DNA of 64,000 nt from Phaeosaccion multiseriatum (lineage: Eukaryota; Protista; Ochrophyta, other classes), in NCBI GenBank assembly GCA_965112735.1, contig OZ218956.1, positions 3,782,001 to 3,846,000 of the forward strand. The letters run 5' to 3'. The translations under genes and the position numbers were made by a program. Under the pieces are notes generated by a model. The model was not told the origin of the DNA. It searched no databases and saw only the letters and a list, made by a program, of their open reading frames with translations. Positions within the stretch are counted from its first letter, which is position 1; each line of letters starts with the position of its first letter. This document shows, in pieces, positions 11,409-44,300 of this stretch.

Positions 11409-12432
11409 GATCGCCTCTAGTGCTGCCAGTCGCTGCACTCTGACAAGAGAAAAGGGATGGGCGAATGATAGGCACGACGCGTTAGTGCGAGGGAATTCGT
11501 TGCTCAGCTGAGTAAGCAGGTACTTGACGTCACGGCTCAAAGAAAGATGCGGAAAGGCTGAGTGGGACTGACCTGATCCGCTCGGCGGGCGAGAGGGGAC
11601 TGTCTCCGCCCCGCGCTCTCCCTTCTCCTCTTCGAGAGCAAGAACGGCCCCGCCGCTGCTGCTCCTTCCACTCCCCCCCCCTCCCCGTTCCTCCTCGATT
11701 CGCACTCTGCGGGAAGCACGTATGGGGTGCAAGGAAAGACAATGGGGCAGCGTTCACTGAGTACCGCGTTACGCCTCCTCTCCATGAAAGCTCAGTCAGT
11801 CAGTTCAAAAAACAAATCTACCTTTCCAACAACAACGCGCAACGCTCACCTCTACTGCCTCGCTGGCCTGCTGTTCACGACGCTTTCATCAGCAGCAAGA
11901 TGCGCACTCCGCCTTTCCTGGCCTGTCCTCTGTCTTTCACCCCCAAAACCTCGCAAATGCCAAACTGCCTCCTTGGCCTTCCTATCCGCCAGAGTCGCTG
12001 CTGCTGCTGCTGCTGCTGCCTCCTTTGCCGATCTGTCCTACGCTCGCTGTTCCCCGTAGCAGCACCATCACCCTCGATGTACCAGCCGAACACATCTTCC
12101 TCCCTTCTTTCCAACCCTCTCCCTCTCTCTCCTTTATTGGGTTGGCAAAAGTAGAGCTATGCCGCCCCGGGGGTGTACGTCCCTACTTTTGATGTCGAGG
12201 TATTGAAGCTTGTCCCAACCGTCCCTCCCCCCTTCCCCCCATATAATTAACCCTCCTTTCCTCCACTCATCCACCCCGCCCCCTTCCCTGGTAGATAGCT
12301 TCCTAGTCTCTCTGTAGTCCTCTTCCCAGTCGCTTTGACTAAGAATCGAGCGATTTTTGGCTGAAGAGGCTTCCGCTTGAAAAAGGAGATCACTTCTCGG
12401 ACTCTCCCCCCCACTTCTCTTCCAAAGGAGAC

Positions 12433-13793
12433 ATGTCGCAGCTCACGATTCCCTGCGCAGATGTCCGTGTCCACGGGCTTGTTACCAGTGATGGCGCCAC
12501 CATCCTCACGCCGCACGCCTTGAGGTGGGTCCTGGAAGAGGCGGGGAAGGCACACTTGAACTTCTCCCCCCGCCCCCTCATTCCCTCTCCGCTGCCTCCC
12601 TCGTGGCCCCTCCTCCACCAGGTTTCTGTCGTTCCTGCACCAGAGCTTCGACCAGCGCCGCCGGCTCCTGCTGCAGCTCCGCGAGACGCGGCAAATGGAG
12701 TTCGATGCAGGGGCGCTGCCCGACTTCAATCCGAGCACGAGGGCCATTCGAGAGGATGCCAGCTGGAAAGTGGCACCACCTCCGCCAGACCTGCAGGACC
12801 GCAGGGTGGAAAGTGAGTGTATCTGCTTGGCTTTTGCTCTTCTCGCTGATGCTGTATACTTATACTTCACACTGCAGGGCTACTGTCGCTCAGTCCTCCC
12901 TCCCTCCCTTGCTTTCTCCCCCTCTTGTCCTTCTTTCCTTCTCACCACAACAACTCCTCCTCCCCTCATCTCTTCCCTTCCTGCCAGTCACGGGACCGGT
13001 GGACCGCAAAATGGTGATCAACGGGCTCAACAGCGGGGCAAGCACCTACATGGCGGACTTCGAGGACTCTTCCGCCCCCACCTGGGCCAACATGATCGAC
13101 GGACAAGTCAACCTCCGGGACGCCGTTCGCCGCACCATCACCTACAGCAACCCCGCCACCGGCAAGAAGTACACCCTCAACTCGAAGACCGCCGTACTTC
13201 TCGTGCGGCCCCGCGGATGGCACCTTGAGGAGGCCCATGTGACTGTGGACGGTCGGCCCGTGTCCGCCGCGCTCTTCGACTTTGGCATGTACTTCTTCCA
13301 CAACGCCTACGACCTCATGCGCAACGGGTCAGGCCCGTACTTCTACCTCGCCAAGATGGAGAACGCTCTGGAGGCGAGGCTGTGGAACGACGTGTTCGTG
13401 GCGGCGCAGAGCTTCATGGGGGTGCCGCAGGGGACCATCCGGGCCACTTCGCTGCTCGAGACCATCACTGCTGCCTTCGAGATGGAGGAGATGCTTTACG
13501 GTGAGTCGCGGGGAGAGGGAGGGAGAGAGGGAGAGAGAGAGGGAGAGAGGGAGGGAAGGTGGGGGGGACGGAGAGGCAGTGGGCGGCTGTTGGGCACTTG
13601 TCTTGCTGCTGTTGTACTGCTGTTGTAGCTGTATCGATCGCCAGCAGCACCAAGAGTAGGCGGGTGTGGTCGTCGTAGAAGGCCGCCAACACAACGGTTT
13701 GGTTGGCAACGATGCCAGTAACACACCATACCGCGGCCCCTCCTCTGTCGCTTCACAGAGCTCCGCGAGCACTCTGTGGGGCTGAACTGCGGG

Positions 13794-24294: not shown

Positions 24295-27200
24295 ATGGTG
24301 CCCACTGTCATGCAAAGCCCGCCACGGGGCTGCAAGGTAGCTGTAGCTCTTTCCTCTTGCTCCTCGACGCCACCGACGGCAGATTTAAGGCGGCGAAGTG
24401 GGAGGACAGTTATTGCCAAGGGGGGCAGTTCGCCGATTGGAGCGGGGGTGGCGGCGGGCGGTCTTGTGCAGCCGCATACAGCAATGGCGGTGGTCGTCCC
24501 CTCCACCATGGAGGCGGAGGGGGGGCGGCAGACTCCAGGGGTGGAGGGTGCGGAAGTGCAGAAGCAGCAGCTAGAAGGGGAAGGGGGAGAGGAGATTGGC
24601 AGAACTCAACCGCCCCCGGCTGGCCCTCTGCCAGCTAAGTGCCCGGAGGATACTCCTTCAGGAGAACAGCGAACAGGAGAGCAAGCAGCAAAAGAACAAC
24701 CACCAGAAGCAGCAGCAGTAGCACCAGCACCAGCACCAGCAGCACCAGCAGCACCAGCAGAAGCAGCAGAAGCAGCAGTCGCAACCTCAGCCGTGGAAGG
24801 AGCAGCTCCAGTTACTGTTAATAGTGGGGACGGAGGTCTTACCCCTCCTCCCCCCCCCTGTACCCATATGACGGAGACTGAGGAAGTGATGGCCCCACTG
24901 GCGGCAGCTGCGTCAGAAGAATCACCCATGCTACCATTAACAGCCCTGGAGGACATGCCTGTTGGCGTCGCGGCAGCGGCACTGGCCGCCGCTTCCGCAG
25001 CCGCAGGCACAGCCACCATCACCAGCACCAGCACCCCCCGTGAATCCAAAAAGAGGGGGCGGACGAGGAAGCCTGCCGGGCGGTGGGAGGTGGGCGGGTC
25101 GGTCGATAGCTGTGGACCTCGAGCTAGTCGCAGGCGGGCAGCCCCAAACAGATTTTCCACAGACCTGCCGTCTGAGACGGAGTTGGCCAACATCCAGCAG
25201 GTGAGACGAAGCAATGGAAAGAAGGGAAGGGAAGGGGGGGTGCAAGGTTCAGTTCTTATTCACCCAGCAGTTTCAGTTCCAGTTTCGACCCAGTTTCAGT
25301 TTTTGGAGGGTTTTATTGGTTCCATCCCTGCGTCCGCACAGCCTCGCCCCGCCCCTCCCATGGGCCCTCTGTTCCCCCCCGCACATCCCACAGACGGCCC
25401 TCCTCATCAGCAGGCCCCTCCATAAAGTAATAAACCGAGAGTCCCGTGTTTGCGTTTGTGTCTTCCCCCTTTCTCCTTCCCCTCTGTGCACATGAACTGC
25501 CTTCCTTGCTTTCTCCTACACCACAGTAACAGCAGCCCCCACCTTGTCCCCTAACTCTCAAAAGATAGCCTGCTTTTCTACGTCCTTCCTCTCATTTGTT
25601 CTCTCCTTGCGCAATAAGAAGAGGATATCTTCCCCTTGTGTGGGGCGTTCACCCTCTAAGCACGACCAGAGCCATGCGTTGGTCCAAAACACACATTGAT
25701 TGGCATTGAAGGGGTGTAGTGCGTCTGCAGCGAGGGTCCTTGCCCTCCCCCCCTGGGGTTTTGCCGAAAGAGCACATTGCTTGAGGCAGGACTCTCCCTG
25801 CACAGAGGGGGAGAAACGGACGTTTGAGTAACGGTTTCCGAATGCCCCCCCCCCCCTTCCCCACCCCCGTCTCCTCTACTATCGTACTTTGCAGGCCATT
25901 GAGAACTCGAGGGCGGACCAATTCCACCAAGAGGTAGGGCAGGAGACCGTTCCCCTTGCCCCCACCTTCTTCCCCACCATTGAGGAGTTCAAAGATCCGC
26001 TCAAGTATATTGAGTCTATTCGGCCCGAGGCGGAGAAGTATGGGATTGCTAAAATCACCCCCCCGACGGGATGGAACCCGCCAAAGATAGACGAAGCGCC
26101 TCACGCACACAAGAAGTTTCCGACCAAGAAGCAGCGTGTGGACCAGCTGCAGCAGGGGGAGTCGTTCGACGAGGGGGACGAGTTCACTCTGGATGAGTAC
26201 CGGCAGCAGGCCCTTCGCTTTGCTGAGAGTTGGACGCGGACGCACTACGGCCCCGGCCGCCAGAAGCAACAAGAGGAGGAGGGGCAGGGGGGGGAGCAAC
26301 AGCCGCCGCTGCCGCCACAGAAGCCACAGAAGCTAGAGGAGGACGGGGTGGAAGGGGTAGGGGTCGCATCAGCAGCAGGGGCAGCAGGAGGAAAGGCGGG
26401 CGGGCCCTCCCTGGAAGACCTGGAGCACGACTACTGGCGCCTCGTGAGCACGTCGTCCTCTGAGGTGGAGGTGCAGTACGGCAACGATCTCGACGTGCAG
26501 AGCTACTGGAGCGGCTTCAGCGCCAGCCCCGAGGGGTACATGGAGGGCAAGTGCTTTGATCGGGAGGCGGAGATTGACTTCTCGCAGGCCGACTATTACA
26601 AAAAGTGCGGCTGGAATCTCAACAATCTGGCGTTTTGGCCAGGCAGTGTACTGCGCTTCTTTCGGGCGCACATCCGCGGCGTGACGGCCCCGTGGCTGTA
26701 CATTGGCATGCTCTTTGCCACGTTTTGCTGGCACACCGAAGACAACTACCTCTACAGCCTCAACTACCACCACCACGGGGCCCCCAAGCAGTGGTATGGG
26801 GTGCCGGGTACCAAGGGGAAGCGCTTTGAGGATGTGGTCAAGATGCACCTCAAGGGGGCCATGGAGGAGGTGCCGGACCTGCTGTACCATATCACCACCA
26901 TGCTCTCCCCCTCGCTGCTGCTGTCGAGGAAGGTGCCTGTACACCGCCTCATTCAGTACCCTGGGGACTTTGTCGTCACCTTCCCCAAGGCGTACCACGG
27001 CGGTTTCAGCTACGGCTTCAACTGTGGGGAGGCGGTCAACTTTGCCGTTCCCAAGTGGGTCAAGTACGGCACGGAGAGCAACGAGATATACCGCCGCTTC
27101 AAGCGCCCCTCCGTGTACAGCCACGATCGCCTCATGTTCACGCTCACCATGTACCTCCCCGACCACCCGCTGGAGGGCTGTCAGGAGCTGGTGGCGGAGC

Positions 27201-27862
27201 TGAAGCGTATGCAAGAGGAGGAGATGTATCTGCGAGGCATGTTGACGGACTTGGGCGTGCGAGATGTGAGCAGCAAGGTGGTGCTGCCCAAGTTCCGCCT
27301 CACGGTCATTGAGAGCAAGGCACTGGACTACGACGACCGCCGCATGTGCAAGACGTGCCAGCACACGTGCTTCATGAGCGGCGTCAGCTGTGAGTGCACG
27401 CAGAAGGATGTGTGCTGCCTGCGGCACTGGCGCGACCTGTGCAAGTGCCCTCCCCAAAACATGTTCTTCTTCTTTTGGATGACGAAGGAGGACATTGATC
27501 ACATCGTCAGTGTGGCGGAGAGCTTTGTGAAGCGCCTCGAGGCCAACGGGGGCCAGGCCGTGGCCGCAGAGGCGGACAGCTTCCTGCAGAGGCTCATACC
27601 CTCCTCTCTCAGCGACGCGCAGGCTCTGGAGCAACAGCAGCAGCTTGAGCGGCAGCAGCAGCAGTTCGTGCAGCAGCAACGCCAGCAACTTGAGCAGGAG
27701 CAGCAGCAGGCGTTGGTGGCACAGCAGAAGGCTATGCAGAGTGTGAAGCAGGAGCAGCAGCAGGCGTTGGTAGTACGGCAGCAGGCTATGCAGGCCCTAC
27801 TGAAGCAGGAAGAGCAGCAGCAGCAGCAGCAGCGGGCGGCGGAGCAGCAACGCCAACAGCTT

Positions 27863-27896
<34 letters not shown>

Positions 27897-28468
27897 TCCA
27901 GGAGCAGTACATGATGCAGCAGATACAGCAGGAGCAGCAGAGGCATCAACAGTACATGATGGAGCAGTACGCCCAGCAGCAGGCTTTGCAGCTGCAGCAG
28001 CAGCAGCAGCAGCAACAGCAACAGCAGCAGCAGCAAGCAGCGCCCCCCCCCACGGCGCAGCTCGCCTCCCCCCCGCAGCAGCAGGAGCAGCAGCAGGAGC
28101 AGCAGCAGGATCCTGGCCAGGCCTCACAGTCCGAGCCCCCCCTGGCTCCACCCTCCCTTCCCGTACAGCAGCAGCTTCAGGAGCCGACCTCCGCCTCGGC
28201 ACTACCACAGAGCTCACAGCTTGTGCAAACAGTCTTACAGGAAGGCCAAACAGGGCAGGTACAGCAGGAGCAGGAGCAGCAGGCCCCCTCACCATCGGCA
28301 GGGGCAGCTCGAGTCAGCCCCGAGCCTCTGCCTGACGGGCCTGTCGGAGGGGTGGCCGGCACCGTTTGTGTGGCGGTCGCACCCAACGAGAGCGCCGGAG
28401 GCGGCTCCCCCTCCTTACCCGCTGTGCCTGCCGTGCCCACTCTGCCTGTTGTCATCGGGCACATGTGA
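24295..28468 (+). CDS. KDM5/JARID1-type JmjC histone demethylase (JmjN, JmjC, C5HC2 finger, poly-Q tail); exons ~24295-25200 and 25895-28468; start uncertain
   Basis: JmjN APTFFPTIEEFKDPLKYI. JmjC WNLNNL...PWLYIGMLFATFCWHTED...KQWYGVP...FPKAYHGG, with the Fe ligands H-x-E...H intact. C5HC2 CKTC...CEC...CLRH...CKC. Junction QQ|AIENS is phase 0. Confidence 0.92.
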
Positions 28469-29377: not shown

Positions 29378-29871
29378 ATGTCGGAGAGCCTCAGCACCAA
29401 GGCCTTCCGCCTCATCAGCCGCCCCTCCTTCGACCGCTTTATCATCCTGGTCATCGTGGTGAACTGCGTGTTCTTGGCTCTGCATGACCCCATGCAGGAT
29501 ACACAGCCCGACTTCCTCAACGTGGGGGACAAAGTGTTCACCGCCGTCTTCCTCGGGGAGATGCTCGTCAAGTGGTGCGCATTGGGCATGGGCGGCTACT
29601 TCAAAGACTACTGGAATTGGCTCGACAGCTTGGTGGTGGTGACGGGGGTGCTGGGCTTCTTGCTTGAGACGTTTGGGGGTAGTGTGCCCAATGTCAGCAC
29701 CCTCCGAACCCTGCGAGTGCTGCGACCGCTGAGGGCGGTGAGCTTCGTACCCGAGGTTCGGCTGCTTTTCGAGACCATCATCAAGTCAGCAGGGGTCATC
29801 GCAACCCTGCTGAGCTGTATCTTCTCCATCTGCCTGCTCTTTGGCAACTTCGCGTGAGTACTACGTGTGTA

Positions 29872-29929
<58 letters not shown>

Positions 29930-30836
29930 GTGTATGTGTATGTGTGTGTGTGTGCGTGTGCGTGTGTGTGTGTGTGTGTGCGTGCGTGAGTGCCTGTGTG
30001 TGTATATGTATGAGTACCTGTTTGTGCATGTGTGTTTGTGTGTGCGCGCGTGTGCATGTGCGTGCGCGTGTGCTTATGTGCGTGCAGCTGGTGGCACTCC
30101 CCCCCGCCGTGGTGTGAGTGATGACTCGATACGGGGAAGCACTTTGCCGCCGCTCGCCCGTGGCAGCTGAGCCTCACAATCGCAGGACTACAGCGCCTCC
30201 TTCGAAAGCAAGCCTTGGCCTCCCCTCCCACCCCCTGTCACACCCTGCCACCTTTGCAACTACGTCTTGCGGCTGACTGAAGCGACTCTCTGACTCTCCC
30301 TTTCGTCTCCAACACATGCATAATACCCCTAATGTTTGGGCACCTCCCCCCCCCTCCTGACGTACGAACGTACAGTTACACGTACTGGGGAGGCACCATG
30401 AAGCGCACTTGCTTCTCGCTGGTCAGTGGGCTCTCGTGCGCTGACGAGGGGGTGTCCTGCGACTGCGATGACTCCGAAGCGCTGCAGCCTCTGCAAGACA
30501 CGGTAAGTGTGACAGTGGCGTGACAGTGGCGGCCTTAGTCTCTTAGTCAGGACTTCTTGGGGGGGGCGGGTAGAACGGTGTCCCCCCTCCCCCCCCCATT
30601 TCTGTACTGTCCCTGCCGCGGCTTGTAACCGTCCCCACTGCCCCGTTTGATCCAATGATCCAATGATCCAATCGCTTTAGTGGGTCCCGCCGGAGCCCTA
30701 CGGTAATGAGCTCACGTGCAGCGCGGACTCCGAGGCGGGGTATGGCTGCCCCTCCTTCGCCGTGTGCTGCCCCTCGTCAGCCGCCCCCAACGCCGGCGTG
30801 ACTCACTACGACAACATCTACTCCGCCTCCTACCAG

Positions 30837-30926
<90 letters not shown>

Positions 30927-33900
30927 GTTTGTGCGTGTGTGCGTGTGTGTGTATGCGTGTGTCTCCATGCGTGTGTGTGTGAGTGTGTGTATGTGCGTGT
31001 ATACGTGTATGGGTGTGTGTGGGTGAATTTGTGTATGCGTGTGTGTGATTGTGTGTGTGCGTGTGCGTGGGTGTCCAACGCCGGCGTGACTCACCAAGAC
31101 AACACATATTCCGCCTCCTTCCCTCCTTCCCTTCCTCCCATCCTCTGCCATCCCTCCACAGATGTTCACGATGGTGTCTATGGAGGGCTGGTTCAAAGTG
31201 GCGGCGCTCACGGCCGATGCGGTGGGAAGCTGGGCGGTGCTGGCGCTCTTTGTGGCGTTACTTTTGGGCAACGTGTGTTTCGTGTTGCTACTGCCTGCCG
31301 CAATGAGCACCAAGCTTCAAGTGGCTATCGAGGAGAAGGAAAAAATTGACTTGCTGTTCGAGCAGGAGAGGGAGGGGGCCAGAATTGAGGGGGGAGGAGG
31401 GGAGGGAGAGGGTGGGGTGGGGGGAGGGGAGGGCGGTGAAGCGGGAGGCGGGGGGGGAGGGAGAGGAGGAGGAGGAGGAGGAGGAGGAGGAGGAGGAGGG
31501 GGGGGGGCAAGGAAAGGGGTGGGGAAAAGCCAAGGTCGATCCTCCTCCTCCTCCTCCTCCGCGGCCGGCAAGGGCAAGGCGCTGTCGGAGCTGGAGCAAC
31601 TGCTGCAAGACTACAACAAGTACCAGGAGAAGGAGATGGCCGGCATCGAGCACGAGGAGGCAGTGAGGAGGGGGGTCATTAAGGAGAAGCCCGTCGAGGA
31701 GCCTGCCCCGCCCAAGTACACGCCCTATCCTACCCACCGGGGCTGGAGGTGGCTGAGGAGACTGGTCACGGCAGATACAGGGCCCTTCGCAGCGGCGGTG
31801 TATGTGATCATCTTCCTCAACGCGGCGTTGCTGACAATTGTGAGTGCGGGGGAGGCGCCTGACACCACGTACGCGCTGCTGCAAGTGAACTATGTGTTCA
31901 CTGCCTTATTCGTGGCGGAGGCCCTGATCAAGATCCTCGCTTTGGGACCCGTGGGCTACTGCCAAGACAGGTGCGCGTGAGTGTGTGTGTGTGTGTGTGT
32001 GAAAGAGAGAGAGAGGGTGTGTGTGTGTGTGAGTGTCTGTGTGTGTGCGTGCGCGTGTATTCGTGTGTGTATGTATGTGTGTGTGAGAGTGAGTGCGCCG
32101 ACTACCATCCTTTACTTTCCAACATACGGAAGCATATGGAAGCTTGGAGTTTCGGCGGAGGGGACGCTGGTGGAGTAGGAGGAGCAATCAAAAGCAGGAA
32201 GGGAAGGGAAGGGAACGCTTACATCTCTCATCCTCCCTGCTCCCCCCCCCCCCTTCACCCACACACGCCCGCCCGCCTCCACTCATACCCTGCCATCCAC
32301 TGCCATCCACTACCATCCACCGCCATCCCTCCCCCCCTGGGCAGATACAACGTGTTCGACTTGTTCATAACTTGCCTGGGGGTGGTGGAGGTTGGCCTTG
32401 AGGCGATACCCTTCTTCGCCGCCTTCCGCATTGTGCGCATCTTCCGAGTGGCGAGGGTCATGCGGCTCGGCTCCCTGGCCAAGATGGGGGGGAGGGGAGC
32501 GGATATACAGCAGTCCACGCCTTCACCACAGGTAGGGAAGAGGGGGGGGGGAGAGGAGCGCTTGCTTCAAGGCTCGGAGGGGAGGGGAGGGAGGGGTTGC
32601 TGTGCTGGGGTGGTAAGGGGGCGGGGTAGCAGCAGCAACAGAGAGGGGCAGGGGCGGGGGGAGCCTTGGGAGCGGAAGAAGAGCAAAATTGTTGACAGCG
32701 TCCAGAGCAAGCTTACAAGCACCCACCCCTCCACCCCTCCACCCCTCCCTCCCTCCACCCCTCCACCCCTCCACCCCTCCACCACTCCATCCCCTCCCTC
32801 CCTCCCTCCCTCCCTCCCTCCCTCCCTCCCTCCCTCCCTCCCTCCCTCCCTCCCTCCCTCCACCCCTCCCTCCACCCCTCCATCCCTCCACCCCTCCACC
32901 CCTCCACCCCTCCACCCCTCCACCCCTCCACCCCTCCACCCCTCCACCCCTCCACCCCTCCACCCCTCCACCCCTCCACCCCTCCACCCCTCCACCACTC
33001 CATCCCCTCCCTCCCTCCCTCCCTCCCTCCCTCCCTCCCTCCCTCCCTCCCTCCCTCCCTCCCTCCACCCCTCCACCCCTCCACCCCTCCACCCCTCCAC
33101 CCCTCCACCCCTCCACCCCTCCACCCCTCCACCCCTCCACCCCTCCACCCCTCCACCCCTCCACCCCTCCCTCCCTCCCTCCCTCCCTCCCTCCCTCCCT
33201 CCCTCCCTCCCTCCCTCCCTCCCTCCCTCCACCCCTCCACCCCTCCACCCCTCCACCCCTCCACCCCTCCACCCCTCCACCCCTCCACCCCTCCACCCCT
33301 CCACCCCCTCCCTCCCTCCCTCCCTCCCTCCCTCCCTCCCTCCCTCCCTCCCTCCCTCCCTCCCTCCCTCCCTCCCTCCCTCCCTCCCTCCCTCCCTCCC
33401 TCCCTCCCTCCCTCCCTCCCTCCCTCCCTCCCTCCCTCCCTCCCTCCCTCCCTCCCTCCCTCCCTCCCTCCCTCCCTCCCTCCCTCCCTCCCTCCCTCCC
33501 TCCCTCCCTCCCTCCCTCCCTCCCTCCCTCCCTCCCTCCCTCCCTTCCTTCCTTTCCCCCTGCACAGCTGGACCTTACCCGCATCCTGGGCATCCTTGCG
33601 TCAAGCTCCATGTGGCTGCTCAACATCTTCTCCATCCTCACCCTCTTCATGTACATGTTCGCCGTCTTGGCAGTGCAGTTCTTCGGGGGAGACATTCCCG
33701 ACCTACTCACAGATACCACCAACGGATTACAATTCACCTACAACTCGTTTGGAAGGGCCTTTGTCACGGTGCTGGGGCTGTTCACCGGCAACCGATGGGC
33801 GGATATGGTGTACACCACTGTGGCGGAGAAGGGGGAGGACACAACGGGTGCAGAAGGGGTCTACTTGTTCTACATTGCCTGGTGAGTGGGGGGGGGGGCG

Positions 33901-36900
33901 TGTATATAGTGCGTGTGTGGGTGGGTGCGAGGGAGGGAGGGGGAGCGGGAGGGGGTGGGAGGGAACACGGGAGGAAAACCTACGGCCGCAGTAAAAACGG
34001 CTCCTTCACGCGACGTACGTACCTCGCTACTTGTGCGCGTCTCCTTCCTACCCCTTCTGTCGCCTTTCCCATCCTTCCGTGACCACTCCTTCCGTGACCA
34101 CTCCTTTCCTGACTACTCCTTCCGTGACCACTCCTTGCGTGACCACTCCTTCCCTGACTGCTCCTTCCGTGACCACTCCTTCCGTGACCACTCCTTCCCT
34201 GACTGCTCCTTCCGTGGCCACTCCTTCCCTGACTACTCCTTCCGTGACCACTCCTTCCGTGACCTTTGGTACCAAAAAAGGACGGTGGTGGGTCGGTGGC
34301 TGCTGTCGGCCATCGTTGTAGCGGTGCTGTTCTACGAAGTCGACAAGGATGGAGAGGACCACCTCAAGCTCGTGGCCAGGGGCAACATGCGGGCCGTATT
34401 TGCTGTGGAGAGAGCCTACAGCAAGGGGCTGAGGAGCGCCGTGTACATGAAGTGGAGAAAGAAGTTTGAGGCCAGCGCCATGGGCCGGCAGAGGTGCGCA
34501 TGTGGAGGGAGGGGGAGGGAGGATTGGGAAGGGGAGGGAGGGGGGTGGTGTATGTGTGTGTGTGCGTGTGTGTGAGTGTGTGAGTGTGTGTGTGGGTGTA
34601 TGTATGTATGTGTGCGTTTGTGTGTGTGTACGTCTATGTATGCGTGTGGCTGCTGCTCTCGGCCCTCAGCGATGAAGACACCGCGTACAATGTATGCGGA
34701 TGCTTGTGAGGCCCTAGCGGAATGGTGCCTCTGACTGAATGCCTTTGAATGCCTCTGGATGCCTCTGTATGCTTCTGTATACCTGTGGATGCCTCTGGAT
34801 ACCTCTGGATGCCTCTGGATGCCTCTGTATGCTTCTGTATACCTGTGGATGCCTCTGGATACCTCTGGATGCCTCTGGATACCTCTGTATGCTTCTGTAT
34901 ACCTCTGGATGCCTCTGGATACCTCTGGATGCCTCTAACCGATCGCCTCTCAGTGCCTTCGGATGCCCCTGGATGTCTCTAGCTGAATGCCTCTGGAGTC
35001 CTCTGAATGCCTCTAGCTGAATGCCTCTGGATCTAACTCATCGCCTCGGGATGCCTGTAACCCAAATGCCCCCGACTGCATGGGTCCTGAGTAGGAGGGC
35101 GGGTGGAGCCATCAAACTCATCGCCCCCGCCGTGCAGCCCCCGAAGCAAACTCTCTGGCGCCGCCTTGCCGACAGTCAGGACAGCTTCTTGCTCTTCGCG
35201 GAAAACAACCCTGTCCGGCAGTTCGCCGCCTGGCTCACAGATGGCACCTCAGTCACAGACGGCAGCAGATTCGACTCTCCTCCCGAGGAGCCTGAGGGGG
35301 GCAGGATGTCCAAATGGCATTCCGCGGTGGTGTACAACCAACAGCTGCGGCGGGCCTGTCATTACGCCTTCGAACTTTGCTTTGTGGGGGTGGTGGTGCT
35401 GAGCGCGGTCACCGTGGCGCTGGATGTAGAGTTCTTGTCGGGACATCGCTCGGATGAGGGGCTAAGAGAGAGCTTGGTGCAGCTCGAGCGTTTCGAAACG
35501 GCCTTCTTCTGCGGGGAGATAATGCTCAGGTCCATCGCCAACGGGTAAGTGAGTGAGTGAGTGAGTGAGTGAGTGAGTGAGGAGTGAGTGAGTAAGTGAG
35601 TGAGTCAGTGAGTGAGTAGTGAGGGAGTGAGAGAGTGAGTAGGGGGTTTCGGTGGGCGGGTGGGCGTGTAAGTGAGTGAGGGAGTGAGTGAGTGAGTGAA
35701 GGGAGGGAGGGAGGAGGGGAACGCCGGGGAGAGGAGAGGGGAGGGGAGGGGAGGGAGCGAGGAAGGATGGAAGGGAGGGAGGGAGCGAGGGACGAGGGGC
35801 GAGGGAAACAGCAGGGGAGAGAGAGGGAGGGAATACGTGAGTGGGTGGAAGGGAGAGGGAAAGAGAGGGAGAGATAGAGAGGGAAGTGAAGTGAGTGAAG
35901 TGAGGGAGCGAGAATGAAGTGGATGTGTGACAGTGACTGACTGACTGAGTGACTGACTGACTGGATGGATAGGACTGGAGAAGGAGCATCCACCTCACCT
36001 GGGGGGCCGTTCCTCTCCAAGCCCTCCAAGCGCGTCCTTCCCCTCCTCCCCGTGACAGTGAGGGTCAAGGGTCAACGCCCCAACCCAATCAACAATCGAA
36101 CGACCTCAACCCCCCCCTCCCCACCCCCCGTGATTCTCCCAACGAACATTACCATGCCATGAACTAGGCTGTACTTCCTCCCTGGAGCCTACCTGGAGAG
36201 CCCTTTGGCCAAGCTCGACTTGCTCGTCACCGGCAGCGGCGTGCTGAGCCTCTGCCTCGACGACTCCCTGCTTGACTCGGACTCCGGGTCGGGAGGACAG
36301 AACGCCACCACCACCACCTCCCTCTCCGCCCTCCGCATGCTTCGCCTCACCCGCCTACTGCGTCTGCTCCGCCTCGGCTCTCGCTCCAAGGCCCTGGTGC
36401 ACCTCATCGAATCACTGCGTAAGTCAACAAGGGCCATGTTGCTCTCCTCCCTCATAGTGCTCTTCTTTTGGTACCTGTGGTCCGTCATGGGGTTGCAGCT
36501 CTGGGTGGGGCGCTTCGGTTACTGCTCCGACGACGGACGGGCACAGGCCAACGGAGTCAGCGAGTTCCACATCTGGGCATCCGGCTCTGGCTCTGGCGAC
36601 GACGATAGCGACGATGCTGGCGATGACTGGACCGAAGTACCAACTCGCGAGGCTTGTGAGGCGGACCCCTCCTTGCGCTGGGTGGGGCACGCCCTACTGA
36701 ACTTTGACGACTTTGCACAGAGCCTCTACTCCGTCTTTGTCATATTCGCCATGGATGACTTCCAGCAGGTCAGGAGGGAGGGAGGGAGGGAGGGAGGGAG
36801 GGGGGAAGGGTGGGGGGAGGGAGGGAGGGAAGGAGGGAGGAATGGTGTGGGTCATGCCTTTGCTGCGCTTTGGGTGCTGTACGACTTCCCCGAGTCCTTC

Positions 36901-38355
36901 CTTAGGCATCGAAACAAAATCAACGCCATCTGTGATACACAAACTCAACCAACTCAATGCCGCTTCTCTCCTCCGCTCCTCCCTCCCCTCACCCCTCCCC
37001 CCCCCCCCCCTCCTTAGATCATGTTCTCCGCCCTGAGCGTGAACGGCGCCTCCGAGTCGAACAACGCCGCTCCTTACAGCAACATGTGGGCGTCCCTCTT
37101 CTTCTTCTTCGCCATCCTGAGTTTCTCCCTGCTTGTCTATCTCTTTGTGGCCGTACTGTACTCCACCTTCATGTACCTCAACTACACCTCCTCGAGCAAC
37201 CGCCTCAACACCACCAAGGAAGCTTTTTGGTACATGTACCGTTACAAACTCTTCAACATTCCGCCCATCGTCGGCGCGAAACGGCCCCTCTCCACGCTCC
37301 GCGGCCGCCTCTTCGACGCCATGGTCTCTGTTCCTGCCGTGGCCGGCGCCCCTCCTGACCAGCAGTCAAGCCGCCCTCCGTTCGATCGCGCCTTCTCACT
37401 GCTTTTGGCGGCCAACATCTCTATCCGTTTCCTCTACGGCGGGCTGTCTCCATCCTACGACCACATGCCGGCCTGGGTCAAGTTGCAGGAGATAGTGTTT
37501 GCAGGCCTGTTTGTGGCGGAGTTTGGCGTGCGAGTGTTCGCCTCGGGGGGTTTCCGAGCGTCCATGCAGTCCCCCTATAACGTCATGGACCTCGCTGTAA
37601 CCGTCGTCATGGCGCTCTTGGGGGTGAGTGGGAAGGGAGGAGAAGGCAGTATACGGACATGGCCTGTGGGCACCGACTCCTCGCCCGCCAGTGATCCTCG
37701 CCAGTGCTCCTGACACCCGTGACTGACCTCACCTGTCTGTGTATGACTGACCTAACCTGTCTGACCTGTCTGTCCGCTCCAAGGTCCTGACACCCCGTCC
37801 GGACACGCCGTCCTGACACCCCTAACCCTGTTCCGCTCCGTCTCAGGTGGACTTCCTGCTGGGGGCGGCGTCGAACTCTTTGTGGAAGCTCGTGCAGGCC
37901 GTGTCTCTGGTGCGGGGGGTGCGCCTCGCCAAGGCCTTTCCTTGTGTAATGGAGGTAACAGCAAACAGAAGCGTGACATTCACATTCATATTCATATTCA
38001 TATTCATATTCATATTCATATTCATTGACGTTCGGGATACTTGGTTGTAGAAAGTCGGTGTCGATATTGTGCATAGGCATCGATTTGGGTCCGTCATGGC
38101 AAAGGTGCAATGAACTAAAACTGAAACTCAACTCAACTGAACTGAAACTCAACTGAGCAGGTGGCCACGGTGGGTTGGAGGAGCGTACCCACGCTTGCCC
38201 CTCTGCTGCTGCTGCTCTCTCTGTGCACCTTCATATACGCCGTGCTAGGCGTCCTGCTCTACGGACATCTCGACACTCAGGTGAGGAGGGGCGCACGCAC
38301 GCACGCACGCACGCACGCAAACACAAACACAAACACACACACACATACACACACA

Positions 38356-38399
<44 letters not shown>

Positions 38400-41300
38400 C
38401 TCTCTCTTTCTATCGCACACTCTCCCTCTCCGTCTCACCCCCTGATGTTCTGTGGTCCTATCTGAATCCCCCCCCCTGCTGGACTCCACAAGGACGAGGA
38501 GGAGGTGGGCTTATTCGGTCCCTCCTGGACGCTATTCTCCCGCCACATCGGCTTCTCCTCCGTGTGGAAGGCAGGCATGACCCTCCTCGGGGTGGCCACA
38601 AGCCCGGGTACGTGCGTGGCTCGAGCCTTAGGGGGCCGGGCACTTGAGACTTGAGGGGAGGAGGTTAGTTACACTTACACTTCGTACGATGAGGCTCAGG
38701 CTGTGCTGTAGGAGATAAAATTACGATTGTGCTACCATTGAAGGGTGAAAAGTAAGACTTTGAGCCTGTGGGGTGGAGGCCCATTGAAGGGTGAAAAGTA
38801 AGGCTTTGAGCCTGTGGGGTGGAGGCCGAGGTGAGGCTCAACTCCTGCTGTCCCTCCCCCGCCACCCCACAGGCTCAAACATGTGGATCTCTACGATGGA
38901 GGCATATCGGCTAGAGGAGGAGCCTCGCTTCCGTTGGGGGGTGGTCTTGTTCTTCTCCTCCTACGCCTTCCTCACGCGCTTCCTACTGTGGAACCTGTTC
39001 ATGATGTGCCTTCTCTTCAAGTTCAAGATACATGGGAGGGACAAGGTAGGGAGGCGGGGGGCAAAGCCAGCATGCACGCATGCACGCACGCGCGCACGCA
39101 CGCACGCACACACACACACACACACACACGCACGTGCTGCCTCTCCATCTGCCTGTTCATATGCCTGCCCTGCTCATATATCTCCCCAGGTGGGTCTGGC
39201 GGTGCAGCAGCTGGAGCAGTTCCGCAGGGCGTGGCAGGTCGTGAGCTTCGACCAGACGGGCAAGCAGACGGGCAAGCAGACGGGCAAGCATATAGTTCGG
39301 CACATCGGCAGCCCCCTGGGGGGAGTCAGACCGAACCCCTTCAAGATCAGAGCGGGGCAGCTTGTGTGCTTCCTGCGCACGCTGTCTCCACCCCTGGGGA
39401 CGGGCCCTGCCTCAAGCGTGCTCGAAACTGAAGTGCTTGCTGAGAAGGTACTGTCATAGTATAGAGGGGAGGGGGGGCTGCAAGAGAGAGAGAAGGAGGT
39501 GTAGATAATATAGGGTCTGGGGTTTGGGCCGACATTGGCTCATCTCATCTCATCTCCTCTCCTCTCCTCCTTTCCATGTCACCAACTTCTCGTGTCAGGT
39601 GCTTGTGTTGATGGGCAGACATTGGGCCGCCCCCCTCGGGGAGTACTACAGCAGCAAGAGCACACACGCACGGGCAAGTACGACGCTCAGCGCCTTCCTC
39701 TCTCGCCCCTCCCTCCGCGACAAGCCGTTACGCTTCCGAGACGTGCTCGTAGCCGTACACAAGCTTCTGGTGTTCGGGCTGGTGTTACCCAATGAGAAGG
39801 AGACCAAGGAGAGGAGAGGAAGAGCCCAGGCCAATCTGTCTCTTCTCAAGCTTGCCGTGCACAGTTTCCTTGACAAGAAGGCGGGGGGCACAGGGGGTTT
39901 GGGGGGGGCGCAGCCCCGGAGGGGCATGACGGCGGCGCCGGGCGGGGCGGGGGCAGGACCTGCCGTGCCAAGATCAGAGGGTTGCAACAGCGAGGTAAGG
40001 GAGTGTAGTGCAGTGCAGTGCAGCAGAGGCCGGGAGGAATGGAGGGAGGGAGGGACGGACGGTACTGGCTGGATGGGGGGGCTGCGGCGGCGACTGCTAA
40101 CTGTGTCCCTAGATGACCAACTGCCACGGCTGGATGGGGGCTTGTCGGCCTGAGGTTGCATCTCGTCTCTCTGTCCTCTCCGAAGGCGAAACTGAGAATT
40201 GGCAAGCAAGTGCAAAACTCAAACTCCAACTCGCCCATCCCCGCTGCGCCCCTGCCCGTGCCCCTGCCCCATGCAATGCCCATATGACTGCCCACTCCCC
40301 CCACCTTTCCCCCGTCCCTGCCCCGTGCCCCGTGCCTCCTACCCCCCCCATCCACTGCCATCCGTCTGCCCCCCAGGCAATGCAGGAGATGTCTCTTCTG
40401 CGGCGCCAGAGCCCTTCTCACTACGAGCTGTCGAAGCGCTGCGCCGTACTGTTCCAGGGAGAGTTCTTGAGGTGGACAGAGGCCATCGATGAGGAGGGCC
40501 TCACGCACAAGTCAAGGAGGGAGGGGCAGTGCCTGTTGGCTGCCATCGCACGGGAGGTCAGTCAGTCAATCACTCACTCACTCAGTCAGTCAGTCAGTCA
40601 GTCAGTCAGTCAGCCCAGTCCTGACAGCCCTCGTCTCTTTCCCAGACTTACTGCCCCTCACTGACTTACTGTCCCTCACTGACTTACTGTTTCTCACTGA
40701 GCAGGTGTCTACCTCTGCCCTGCGAGAGGTGGTGGAGGGGCGGCTGTACGAGCGACACGTGGGGGACAGGAGGCAGAGGGCACGCTTCACGGCCGCCAAG
40801 AAGGCACACACCGCCCTCAAGGAGATCTACAACAGAGTCAAGCAAACGGAGGTAAGGGGACGGATGGGCAGGGGGCTTGGAGGCGTAGTATGGGCATGGA
40901 TGGAGGCGTAGTATGGGTATGGATGGGCATGGATGGAGGAGTATGGGCATGGATGGGCATGGATGGAGGAGTATGGGCATGGATGGGCATGGATGGGCAT
41001 GGATGGGCATGGATGGAGGAGTATGGGCATGGATGGAGGAGTATGGGCATGGATGGGCATGGATGGAGGATTATGGGCATGGATGGGCATGGATGGAGGA
41101 TTATGTCCATGGATGGGCATGGATGGAGGAGTATGGGCATGGATGGGCATGGATGGAGGAGTATGGGCATGGATGGGCGTGGATGGGCATGGATGGGCAT
41201 GGATGGAGGAGTATGGGCATGGATGGAGGAGTATGGGCATGGATGGGCATGGATGGAGGATTATGGGCATGGATGGGCATGGATGGAGGATTATGTCCAT

Positions 41301-44300
41301 GGATGGGCATGGATGGAGGAGTATGGGCATGGATGGGCATGGATGGAGGAGCATGGGCATGGATGGAGGAGTATGGGCATGGATGGGCATGGATGGAGGA
41401 TTATGCGCATGAGGCTTGGCGCTTGGGGCTTGGGCTTGAGCACTGGAAGGCACTGGAAGGCCACCCCTCTCACCCCTCTCCCCTCATCTCGTTGCCTCTC
41501 TCCCCCCTCAGGCTATGCACATCACCCCTACATGGGACGGTGCGACGCTCAGCACAACTCAGCGGATGCGGATACAGACACCGGGCTCTGGCGCCTCCCC
41601 CCCTTGGGCAAGGACCCCCCCCGGGGCAAAGGGTAAAGCCAAGGCCGCAAAGGGTTCCCTCCCCGGAGGTGGTGGCGATGATGTTGGGGGTGGTGTGGGT
41701 GTGGGTGTGCGTGCCATGTGTGGCTCTGCGTGCGGCGAGTGGCTCTTTCTGAGCTGCGATGACGCCGCTGTGAGGGTCTTTCGACGGCGGAAGCGCAAGC
41801 CGGACTACCAACTGACGCAGCGCCTCGAGGTGGGGGGGCAGTCATACGGACAGGGGCAGGGGCACGTTGGTGGGCCTGTTGGTGATACAGTAGCGGGGCC
41901 TGTGGGGCACTGCATGTGCTGCTCGGCGGAGGGCAAGCACGTGTGGGTGGGCTGTGAGGATGGCACCGTACGGCACTTTACGCAGGACCTGCGTGCCTGG
42001 AAGGACGCCCTGGCCAAGCAGCAGCAGGCGTATGGGCAGCAGAGGGCCGACCATGTGGGCAATTCCGGTCCTGACACCGGGGGCGGCAAGCATATGGGCA
42101 ACAAGAGACCGGCCCGGCCCGCCATCCCCTACCGAGCCGACAAGGTGGGCAAGGGGCACAGTGCGAGTGTGCGCTGCATGGCCCAGGCCTTGGAGAGGGG
42201 CCTGCTCTTTACGGGCGGGGCGGAGGGCTCAGTGAAGGTGTGGAAGTGCTCCAAGGGGGGAGGAAGCTCCCCCGCCCTCTCCTGCGATGTGTCCGGCGGC
42301 ATCGTGGGGGGCAAGCCTGTGCGCTGTCTCACGGTTTGGCAGCCCGAGCTGTCCGACGCGGTGCTGGCGGCGTGTCTGTCTGTGGATGACCAACTGGTGC
42401 TGGAGCCGCCGCGCTACCTCCTGGCTGGAGACGGGTTGGGCTTCTTGTCTGTGCTGCCCCTCCGCTCGGACGCGCGCTTCCTCACAGGACTCGACGTCTG
42501 GAGACCCATATACCGCCAGAAAGTCGCAGAGGGCGGTGGGCGCAGCAGCGGCGGCGGTGACGGCTTCACAGATGGCGAGGGCGTAACGGCTGTCGAGGTG
42601 GCGTGGGGCCGCATCTATACAGCGAGTGGCGACAACGGTACCATCCGGGTGTGGGAGGTGGAGTGGGACAGTCCGGAGTCGGACATCAGCAACCCCAGCG
42701 CCAAGGACAGTAGTCCCAAGGGCAGTCCCAAGGGCAGTCCCAAGGGCAGTCCCAAGGGCAGTCCCAAGGGTACTCATCATACCCATGAGGGCGCACCCTT
42801 GCCCCTCGTCGGGGGGGGGCTGTCGGGCCTCACAGGCATGACTCCGTCATCTGTGATCCGAGGGTTGACTCAAGTGGCGCTCATCTCCACGCACTCGGGG
42901 CCCGTCACGGCGCTGGTGGCAGGGGGAGGCTTCCTCTTTAGTGCGAGCGCGGACCTCTCCATCGTTACCTGGCACAAGCCGCTAGAGGACAAGCAGCAGC
43001 AGCAGCAGCAGCAGCAGTTGGTGGTACGACAGGAGAGGCGAGCTAGCGGCGATACAAGTAGTAATCTCGCGGCGGAGGTCAGCAGCCGAGGCACGGGATC
43101 TCCCTCTCCAAGGGCCCCTCCAAGGGCCGCGGGATACTGGCCTCAAAGTCCCGGGGGGGAAGGCTCGTCGCCGCGCCGAGGAGAAGACGAAGAAATGGAG
43201 AAGAAAGGAGAAGAAGAAAAGAAGGAAGGAATGGCGGCCTTCGCGCAAGCACTGTTCGACGCGTCCTCACCCTCGCCCACCCCCATACCCTCACCCGTGC
43301 CGAGCAGAAGAGGCAGCGCCACCTCCTCCTCCTCCGCCGGAAAGGGCTCTGGTCCTGTTACTCTGTCGCCATCTGTAACGTCGTCGCCAACCACGACCAC
43401 CAACACGCTACACGCCCCCCAGCCCGGCACCATCCTGCACGAGGAGACCGTGACGTGTATGCACGTGACGCGCGACGCATGCATCTCCGCCGACCTCAAG
43501 GGGACGGTCGTGGTGCGCCGCCCGGGCAAGTGGATACAGACCTACAACATACGGGTGAGTGAGTGAAGGAGTGAGTGAGTTAGTGAGCGAGTGAGGGAGG
43601 GAGGGATGGAGGGAGTGGGTGGGTTGGTGGGTGGATGATTGGGTGGGTTGGTGAGTGAGTGAGTGAGTGGGTGGGTGGGTGGGTGGTTGGATGGGTGGGT
43701 GGGATGGTGAGTGAGTGAGTGGGTGGGTTGGTGGGTGGATGAGTGGGTGGGTTGGTGAGTGAGTGAGTGGGTGGGTTGGTGGGTGGGTGAGTGAGTGAGT
43801 GAGTGAGCAAGCGAGCGGGGCCTTCCTTCTCGAGTCCTTTGTGAGCCCTTTTGTTGAGTCCTTGTGGGGCAGGGGAAGCACGTGTTGGGGGGACCCTCTC
43901 TCTTGCATTACGTATGTATGCATGTGTGTCTTATGTATGTCTACGTACATCTCTCTCCTCCTCTCACTCACTCACTCACTCACTCACTCACTCACTCACT
44001 CACTCACTCTCTCTCTCTCTCTCTCTCCCTTCTGTCTCTCTTTCTTGCTCTCCCTCTCTCCCTTGCCCCCCCTCTATCTCTTGCTCTCTAAGGTGATGCC
44101 CTCTGCAGCGGAGGTAGAGAGGCTCAAGCCCCTCGCCATAGAGACCCTTCGCGCCTACAAAGCAGCGGGGAGGGTGTCCACAGTCGGAGGAGTAGGCGGG
44201 CCCGGGGGAGGGACGGCAGGGGAGCGAGGCGGGGGAGGAGGAAGAAGCGGAGGAGGAGGAGGAGGAGGAGGAGGAGGAGGAGGGGGGGGGGGGCGGTGGA

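Follow-up and report, generated by a model that had tools for sequence, protein, structure and literature searches.

Introduction

Accounts of ion selectivity in four-domain channels mostly rely on three animal-centred filter rings, EEEE/EEDD, DEKA, and EEKE, read across domains I to IV (DI to DIV). The gene described here encodes a channel of this four-domain kind with the ring E/N/D/N. It lies in 64,000 nucleotides of the alga Phaeosaccion multiseriatum (Ochrophyta; assembly GCA_965112735.1, contig OZ218956.1, positions 3,782,001 to 3,846,000 of the forward strand), a stretch referred to throughout as the window, whose own numbering is used for all positions. In the voltage-gated calcium channels (Cav), a ring of four carboxylates forms the high-affinity Ca2+ site, and a lysine in the ring goes with Na+ permeability in the voltage-gated sodium channels (Nav) and in NALCN (PMC6259924). 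The residue directly after the DII filter position (+1) also bears on selectivity, with Asp favouring Ca2+ and a neutral non-glycine residue correlating with Na+ permeability (PMC10120453).

Protist four-domain channels carry many unconventional rings, 'unlike any animal representative' (PMC6259924, PMC5824947). Those given in the text of Pozdnyakov et al. (2018) include E/S/L/L, E/Q/D/E, N/E/D/N, N/D/D/N, T/E/N/D, and D/D/D/D, as well as Arg- or His-containing prasinophyte filters (PMC5824947), and Fux et al. (2018), citing Verret et al. (2010), also name RSDD/RADD in prasinophytes, SESE, and TEND (PMC6259924). Odd protist filters are already documented, so the surprise here is smaller than was implied by the preliminary description of the window, which was made from the letters alone. 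The text of these two papers, as distinct from their figures, makes no mention of E/S/D/N, of E/N/D/N, or of an insertion in a filter loop.

The filter of the window channel

The channel gene is on the + strand at 29378-39045. The window has a GC content of about 0.58-0.66 and many introns, and the splice junctions were set exon by exon by reading the three-frame display. The resulting model has 14 exons between the start codon and the end of the sixth transmembrane segment (S6) of DIV, with 4458 coding bases, 1486 residues, no stop codons, and GT-AG borders at all 13 introns. A Pfam scan matched Ion_trans (PF00520) in six of the seven stop-free + strand pieces between 29.4 and 39.0 kb (best E 2.7e-33). 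These matches cover pieces of all four repeats, and the library search likewise gave four aligned stretches for each target. Five Arg or Lys residues are present in the S4 segment of DI, six in DII, and seven in DIII; DIV has only an R-x-x-R-x-x-K core, with two Arg and one Lys in register.

All four pore-loop motifs of the preliminary description were found where it had placed them. The DI loop, SMEGW (31177-31191), has its filter Glu in codon GAG at 31183-31185, and both this Glu and the Trp are kept in every orthologue described below. The DII loop, TGNRW (33784-33798), has Asn at the filter position (AAC, 33790-33792) and Arg at +1. In the DIII loop, AMDDF (36748-36762), the filter residue is Asp (GAT, 36754-36756), a second Asp is at +1, and Phe replaces the conserved Trp. 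The DIV loop, ATSPG/SNMW, is encoded by two exons (38595-38607 and 38875-38886), its Gly codon being split G/GC by a phase-1 intron (38608-38872) and its Asn codon lying at 38878-38880. The Trp two residues past the filter, a hallmark of the arrangement in which the filter stands between the pore helices P1 and P2, is therefore kept in three domains of the window channel (DI, DII, and DIV); its DIII loop has Phe instead, but all orthologues have Trp there.

The ring was read as E/N/D/N both from a MAFFT alignment (FFT-NS-2) of 154 sequences, in which deep columns outside the conserved helices are rough, and from phmmer alignments to Cav1.2 and Cav3.2. For DIV, MAFFT and the phmmer alignment to Cav3.2 agree in setting N1431 opposite the canonical Glu/Asp and Trp on Trp, which leaves Pro-Gly-Ser as an insertion, and in setting Thr-Ser opposite the Thr-Gly/Gln of canonical channels. 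For DIII, the phmmer alignment to Cav1.2 pairs the first Asp of AMDDF with the filter Glu, and the Phe with the conserved Trp. The non-canonical filter and the DIV insertion that the preliminary description had proposed are thus borne out by two alignment methods, and also by the orthologues. Logan contigs from four runs of one DNA sample have no differing letters over the DII, DIII, and DIV filter codons and pore exons; this sample is probably the source of the assembly itself, and the agreement excludes consensus error rather than giving independent support. The ends of these contigs fall in repeat-rich introns and are unrelated to splicing.

Orthologous loci share the filter

A word search with the 201-residue DIII exon gave no match, an outcome that its length window would predict. 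A library-wide HMMER search with the DI exon as query found its closest match in P0078, with 45 % identity in DI, which is an open reading frame fragment on a JGI metagenome contig (L001). All other library representatives are about 23 % identical overall to the window protein. The L001 contig encodes a colinear orthologue of window residues 5-1486, and through its DIV frame three further proteins were found in NCBI assemblies, leading to loci L002 (GCA_024449685.1) and L003 (GCA_024449855.1). Two more loci, L004 and L005 (both PJEL01), were added by a metagenome scan. The assemblies that hold L002 to L005 are huge and fragmented. In L002, L003, and L005 the colinearity likewise extends over residues 5-1486; L004 is limited to DIV. 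The window protein and its orthologues share 37-41 % identity.

PJEL01 consists of the unassigned contigs of a Globobulimina foraminifer metagenome (PMC6783311). Because the contigs with these loci have 42-44 % GC, compared with 34 % for the foraminifer, they are from an associated eukaryote and not from the foraminifer. The group as a whole seems to belong to related, mostly uncultured marine eukaryotes plus the alga of the window.

In the orthologues, the four loops are S-[IL]-E-G-W in DI, T-G-S-Y-W in DII, T-[FM]-D-[FY]-W in DIII, and A-T-S-P-G-S-N-G-W in DIV, where the window has S-M-E-G-W, T-G-N-R-W, A-M-D-D-F, and A-T-S-P-G-S-N-M-W. Their filter ring is E/S/D/N. The stretch ATSPGSN-x-W is read in uninterrupted frames in L001 to L005 and in P0152 to P0154, and the join of exons 13 and 14 in the window gives the DIV sequence of the orthologues except for Met in place of Gly. 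Since the orthologues carry ATSPGSNGW in unbroken frames, the exon join and the DIV insertion are real, and the join that the preliminary description had proposed at ATSPG/SNMW is reproduced where there is no intron. Canonical loops, or neutral evolution as a pseudogene, would have counted against that description; instead, the non-canonical DIV loop recurs in the orthologues, which as a group are not evolving neutrally.

In a tree built from 1050 well-occupied columns, for which the DIV-only L004 was left out, the window protein and L001, L002, L003, and L005 group together with support of 1.0. The branch that leads to this clade is long, and the sister of the clade is an ENA metagenome protein with the ring E/E/E/E. 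Further features unite the group. An insertion in the DII S4-S5 linker is present in all members and absent from the nearest outgroups. The conserved Asn of S6 is replaced across the clade by Ser or Ala in DII and by Tyr in DIII, and is kept in DI and DIV. The weakly charged DIV S4 of the window is common to L001, L002, L003, and L005 as well.

Judged from their sequences, these loci represent a conserved, unannotated subfamily of four-domain channels, and the window gene is neither a pseudogene nor the result of mis-splicing. The earlier suggestion of a possible new channel subclass gains support from the filter, the DIV insertion, the weak DIV S4, and the DII linker insertion, all common to orthologues of this level of identity, and also from the fully supported clade and from purifying selection.

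Rarity among the nearest four-domain channels

The filter was compared with those of the 149 library representatives nearest to the query, 143 of which could be scored for the ring. E/E/E/E is found in 74 of the 149, and four acidic ring residues are present in 110 of the 143. Neither E/N/D/N nor E/S/D/N occurs among the 149, and their DIV ring position is never Asn. At the DII ring position, Asn occurs in one representative and Ser in four (of 149). Canonical motifs in the set have three residues between Thr and Trp. The three-residue DIV insertion with intact flanks was found in 0 of 149; P0015 and P0099 are apparent exceptions in which the flanks are disrupted.

Two window residues beside the ring are similarly rare. 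Asp (63) and Asn (54) predominate at DII +1, followed by Gly (8), Ala (5), Ser (3), and Gln (2), with 14 gaps; no basic or aromatic residue (Arg, Lys, or Tyr) was found there in the 149. Phe in place of the DIII Trp occurs in one of them.

Another group has rings of the form x/[S,N,A]/D/x. It includes P0049, a 'hypothetical protein' with E/S/D/D from the green alga [Myrmecia] bisecta, together with P0039, P0017, P0015, and P0037. This group resembles the window clade in having Ser or Asn in DII and Asp in DIII; no member has the DIV insertion or an Asn in DIV. Kinship of the clade with the x/S/D/D Myrmecia group was considered and is unsupported, with identities of 23-27 % over the longer alignments and positions in the tree that are not adjacent (deep node support 0.37).

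Selection on the pore

For the pore-bearing DII, DIII, and DIV segments, the ratio of nonsynonymous to synonymous substitution (dN/dS) is 0.07-0.20 in pairs among L002, L003, and L005, apart from pairs with the DII segment of L005, which are meaningless due to intron read-through in that segment. These values cover the relatives, as the nearest relative of the window is only 41 % identical to it and synonymous sites are saturated. Between L001 and L003, the pore loops are 75 % identical, compared with 50 % for the whole protein; between the window and L001 the figures are 49 % and 41 %. The DI Glu, the DIII Asp, and the whole ATSPGSN segment are invariant among the members. Around the filter, where the orthologues are otherwise conserved, six positions are different in the window. 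Based on these comparisons, the lineage of the window has altered its filter surroundings more than its relatives have, though short of neutrality.

An AlphaFold2 model of the L001 DIV, made from a 44-row alignment, has a mean pLDDT (the confidence score of the model) of 85.7. In the model, the six residues S-P-G-S-N-G form a loop between the P1 helix, which stops at Thr, and the P2 helix, which begins at Trp. The fold matches those of Cav3, Cav1.2, and NavMs, with a weaker match to AtTPC1.

Likeness to known channels

The window protein is most like Cav1 and Cav2 (EEEE) and Cav3 (EEDD), with which it shares four six-transmembrane repeats in one chain, charged S4 segments in DI to DIII, and P1-filter-P2 loops of the type T/S-x-[filter]-x-W, of which the DI loop of the window is a canonical example. 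Its best sequence matches among solved structures are Cav1.2 (E 1.9e-27, in DIII, with Cav1.3 also near) and Cav3.2 (E 9.9e-22, in DIV), well ahead of Nav and NALCN. It differs from Cav in having two acidic residues in the ring instead of four, in the three-residue DIV insertion, in the Phe for Trp of DIII, and in the Arg at DII +1 (Tyr in the relatives) where Cav channels have Asp or Asn. The weak DIV S4 and the loss of the S6 Asn from DII and DIII likewise set the whole clade apart.

The four-acidic ring of the Ca2+-selective Cav channels is thus present neither in the window (E/N/D/N) nor in the orthologues (E/S/D/N). Nor is there a Lys in the DII or DIII ring position as in Nav (DEKA) and NALCN (EEKE/EKEE): DII has Asn or Ser and DIII has Asp, and the Arg of the window is at +1, outside the ring, and is not conserved. 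With regard to the EF-hand-like and pre-IQ/IQ region that follows DIV S6 in Cav channels, the clade has a conserved P-x-P-L-G motif that may correspond to the proximal C-terminus of Cav. No solved chain matched the segment beyond this S6 (residues 300-560 of the L001 frame) at E values up to 1.

NALCN and fungal Cch1 (EEKE, EKEE, NEEE) also have four domains, depart from EEEE, and have weak sensor charges in a late repeat. The window channel has no Lys in its ring, and its match to NALCN is far poorer (E about 3e-5, compared with 1e-27 for Cav1.2). NALCN is part of a large cytoplasmic complex with UNC79 and UNC80 as its partners; the clade instead has a fused or adjacent WD40 propeller. The two-pore channels (TPC) likewise have Asn residues lining a portion of the narrow filter, and changing MGN to VNN in filter II turns the non-selective plant channel Na+-selective (PMC11085791). 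This is a functional analogy only, as TPCs are dimers of two-repeat chains and the window protein is a four-repeat monomer.

A probable channel-WD40 fusion

Downstream of DIV, C-terminal exons and a WD40 frame follow on the + strand (39046-43563, with WD40 at 41440-43563). Based on tblastn with the L001 frames, these are colinear with the orthologous loci and are probably part of the same gene. The Pfam WD40 match in the window scores 40.3 bits against a cut-off of 27. In L001, the frame at 11445-11852 is above the Pfam WD40 cut-off and WD40-type frames span 11445-13045. L002, L003, and the P0153 contig also have WD40 matches downstream of the channel, in the same orientation. A single 733-residue frame in L001, with a weak WD40-like stretch inside it, extends from DIV onwards and stops 34 bases short of the WD40 frame. 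Because the DIV frame ends so close to the WD40 frame, it is likely that the product is a channel-WD40 fusion protein. A literature search found no publication linking WD40 to such a channel.

Between the C-terminal exons and the WD40 frame of the window, at 40880-41410, there is a tandem repeat that reads as a 10-residue unit or as E-E-Y-G-H-G-W, in all three frames.

Predicted permeation

The explanation proposed here, to which a probability of about 0.6 is given, is that the gene encodes an intact, selectively maintained voltage-gated cation channel of a small unannotated four-domain clade, and that this channel would conduct and be poorly selective or monovalent-preferring. The pore is taken to conduct because all of the parts of a voltage-gated pore are present and because the pore loops are under the strongest selection; gating would chiefly be by the DI to DIII sensors. 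With two carboxylates on opposite repeats, no ring Lys, and a reshaped DIV wall, Ca2+ is predicted to be bound far more weakly than in EEEE or EEDD channels, and such weak binding would allow a poorly selective or monovalent-preferring cation flow. Weak Ca2+ selectivity is suggested because of the rules for ring carboxylates, ring Lys, and DII +1 (PMC6259924, PMC10120453), the orthologues having Tyr at +1, and we infer that reduced calcium selectivity is the leading reading. The window has additional changes, with Arg at DII +1, a second Asp in DIII (+1), and, also in DIII, Ala in place of the P1 Thr and Phe in place of the Trp; these may represent a lineage-specific retuning of the outer vestibule. 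The downstream WD40 propeller, probably within the same polypeptide, may tether the channel or report on it inside the cell.

Several points weigh against this proposal. The six changes near the filter could reflect relaxed constraint in the lineage of the window rather than retuning. Gating may be unconventional, given the loss of the S6 Asn in DII and DIII and the weak DIV S4. Some Ca2+ affinity could be regained through acidic residues nearby, namely the Asp at DIII +1 and the Asp that follows the DII Trp. From the one-domain model it cannot be read which residue of the longer DIV loop lines the pore. With regard to expression and splicing, no run on record as RNA carries the channel locus.

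A bolder version, which is possible though doubtful, would make this a new four-domain class in its own right. The Pro-Gly DIV loop and the two-carboxylate ring would give a novel selectivity, monovalent or unusual and partly via backbone carbonyls, the WD40 fusion would couple sensing to a cytoplasmic assembly, and the vestibule of the window would be retuned by the Arg/Asp pair.

It is less likely that the channel is still Ca2+-selective, with the ring carboxylates, the nearby acidic residues, and the carbonyls of the DIV loop together forming a Ca2+ site, and that it does the usual job of an algal Cav in flagellar or excitability signalling. The nearest solved relatives, Cav1 and Cav3, would fit this, as would the link between algal four-domain channels and flagellar Ca2+ signalling (PMC11085791). 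The extra Asp residues of the window on which such a site would draw (at DIII +1 and after the DII Trp) are not conserved, however, the orthologues having Phe or Tyr at DIII +1 and Tyr at DII +1. Likewise, the window has Arg at DII +1, a position taken by Asp or Asn in 117 of the 149 representatives and by a basic residue in none, and four acidic ring residues are the rule in accepted Ca2+-selective channels (PMC6259924).

Slightly less probable again is a non-conducting voltage sensor, in which the remodelled pore would pass no ions and changes in voltage would act mechanically on the fused WD40 and on its partners, in the way that Cav1.1 signals to RyR1 in skeletal muscle. A ring with two carboxylates left, a DIV loop lengthened by Pro-Gly-Ser, and the disappearance of the S6 Asn from DII and DIII are what a disused pore might show, and a WD40 after the channel in every locus would supply the receiver. 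The pore loops of the window also drift more than those of other members. Between the distant members L001 and L003, however, these loops are the best-conserved part of the protein, with 75 % identity as opposed to 50 %; the DI Glu, the DIII Asp, and ATSPGSN are invariant; and dN/dS values of 0.07-0.2 in the pore segments are hard to explain without a filter that handles ions.

Finally, that the odd residues are artefacts of mis-assembly or mis-splicing, or signs of early pseudogenization, is very improbable and largely refuted: the missing RNA-labelled runs, the greater number of filter-region substitutions in the window copy than in its relatives, and the repeat-rich introns in which short-read contigs break are outweighed by a frame open across 14 exons with canonical splice sites, by the absence of contig differences over the filter codons, by the same pattern in five other loci with no introns at the DIV join, and by purifying selection in the relatives.

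Gene structure and neighbourhood

All exons are on the + strand. Exon 1 (29378-29853) holds the start codon and DI S1-S5, including the S4 with five Arg or Lys; it gave the Ion_trans match of E 2.7e-33, ends at a GTGAGT donor, and is colinear with L001. Exon 2 (30376-30502) encodes the extracellular loop of DI after S5, with AG/GT borders and a phase that follows exon 1. Exon 3 (30681-30836), also with AG/GT borders and aligning to L001, continues the DI loop into the start of the P1 helix. Exon 4 (31162-31970) contains the SMEGW pore loop, DI S6, the I-II linker with a Gly-rich tract, and DII S1-S2, with an Ion_trans match.

Part of the 3′ end of exon 3 (30790-30836) recurs in decayed form within intron 3, at 31075-31121, with 15 residues against 16. 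This copy is without a GT donor and lies directly upstream of the exon 4 acceptor.

DII continues with S3-S4 and the clade-specific S4-S5 linker insertion in exon 5 (32345-32531), S5, the TGNRW pore loop, and the start of S6 in exon 6 (33568-33881; Ion_trans), and the remainder of S6 with the start of the II-III linker in exon 7 (34281-34493), which is strongly conserved with L001. Intron 5 consists almost wholly (32617-33560) of about 0.95 kb of CT-rich tandem repeats, which read as P-P-S-L or P-P-L-H-P-S-T in all three frames.

Exon 8 (35092-35544), the acceptor of which is exact to within a few bases only, encodes the end of the II-III linker and DIII S1-S2. Exon 9 (36168-36768) encodes DIII S3-S5 and the AMDDF pore loop; it matches Ion_trans (E 1.7e-21) and is the exon aligned with Cav1.2. 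Exon 10 (37018-37623; Ion_trans) contains the DIII P2 helix and S6, the III-IV linker, and DIV S1-S3. In low-depth contigs from two runs of the same DNA sample, position 36129 is joined to 36993 with one extra T, by which exon 9 would be lost. Because both ends are in C/T-rich tracts, this junction is most likely an assembly-graph shortcut and not a deletion allele or a transcript.

The rest of DIV is encoded by four short exons. Exon 11 (37847-37954) has the weakly charged S4, with the same reduced S4 in the orthologues, and exon 12 (38161-38280) has the S4-S5 linker and S5, with a weak Ion_trans match. Exon 13 (38493-38607) carries the DIV loop, the P1 helix, and ATSP with the first base of the Gly codon, ending at a GTACGT donor in phase 1. 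Exon 14 (38873-39045) completes the Gly codon and adds SNMW, the P2 helix, and DIV S6.

Directly upstream of the channel gene, at 25832-28465, there is one long exon for a histone demethylase with JmjN, JmjC, and zf-C5HC2 domains and an extended Gln-rich tail. Among named organisms, its best matches are in Chrysoparadoxa australica (51 %), Scytosiphon promiscuus (51 %), Tribonema minus, diatoms, and pelagophytes. On the basis of this one gene, the host is suggested to be an ochrophyte stramenopile; an initial green-algal reading was dropped, and green-algal Cav channels are not the relevant comparison. The top match overall (55 %) is from the same sequencing run as the L001-type channel, and further good matches are in PJEL01, which also contains L004 and L005, and in JAANSU, which shares its accession series with the L002 and L003 assemblies.

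Significance

The ring rules can be tested well on natural channels that depart from them and are nonetheless maintained by selection. This clade unites a ring of two carboxylates plus two amide or hydroxyl side chains, the only lengthened filter loop among about 150 relatives, and a Tyr or Arg at DII +1 that is used by none of them. Recordings from such channels would test how DII +1 and the charge of the ring set the preference between Na+ and Ca2+.

To stramenopile algae, in which a small number of Cav and single-domain EukCat channels are thought to support electrical signalling, the clade would add a voltage-gated channel type, and the apparent WD40 fusion hints at a new wiring of the voltage sensor to the cell interior.

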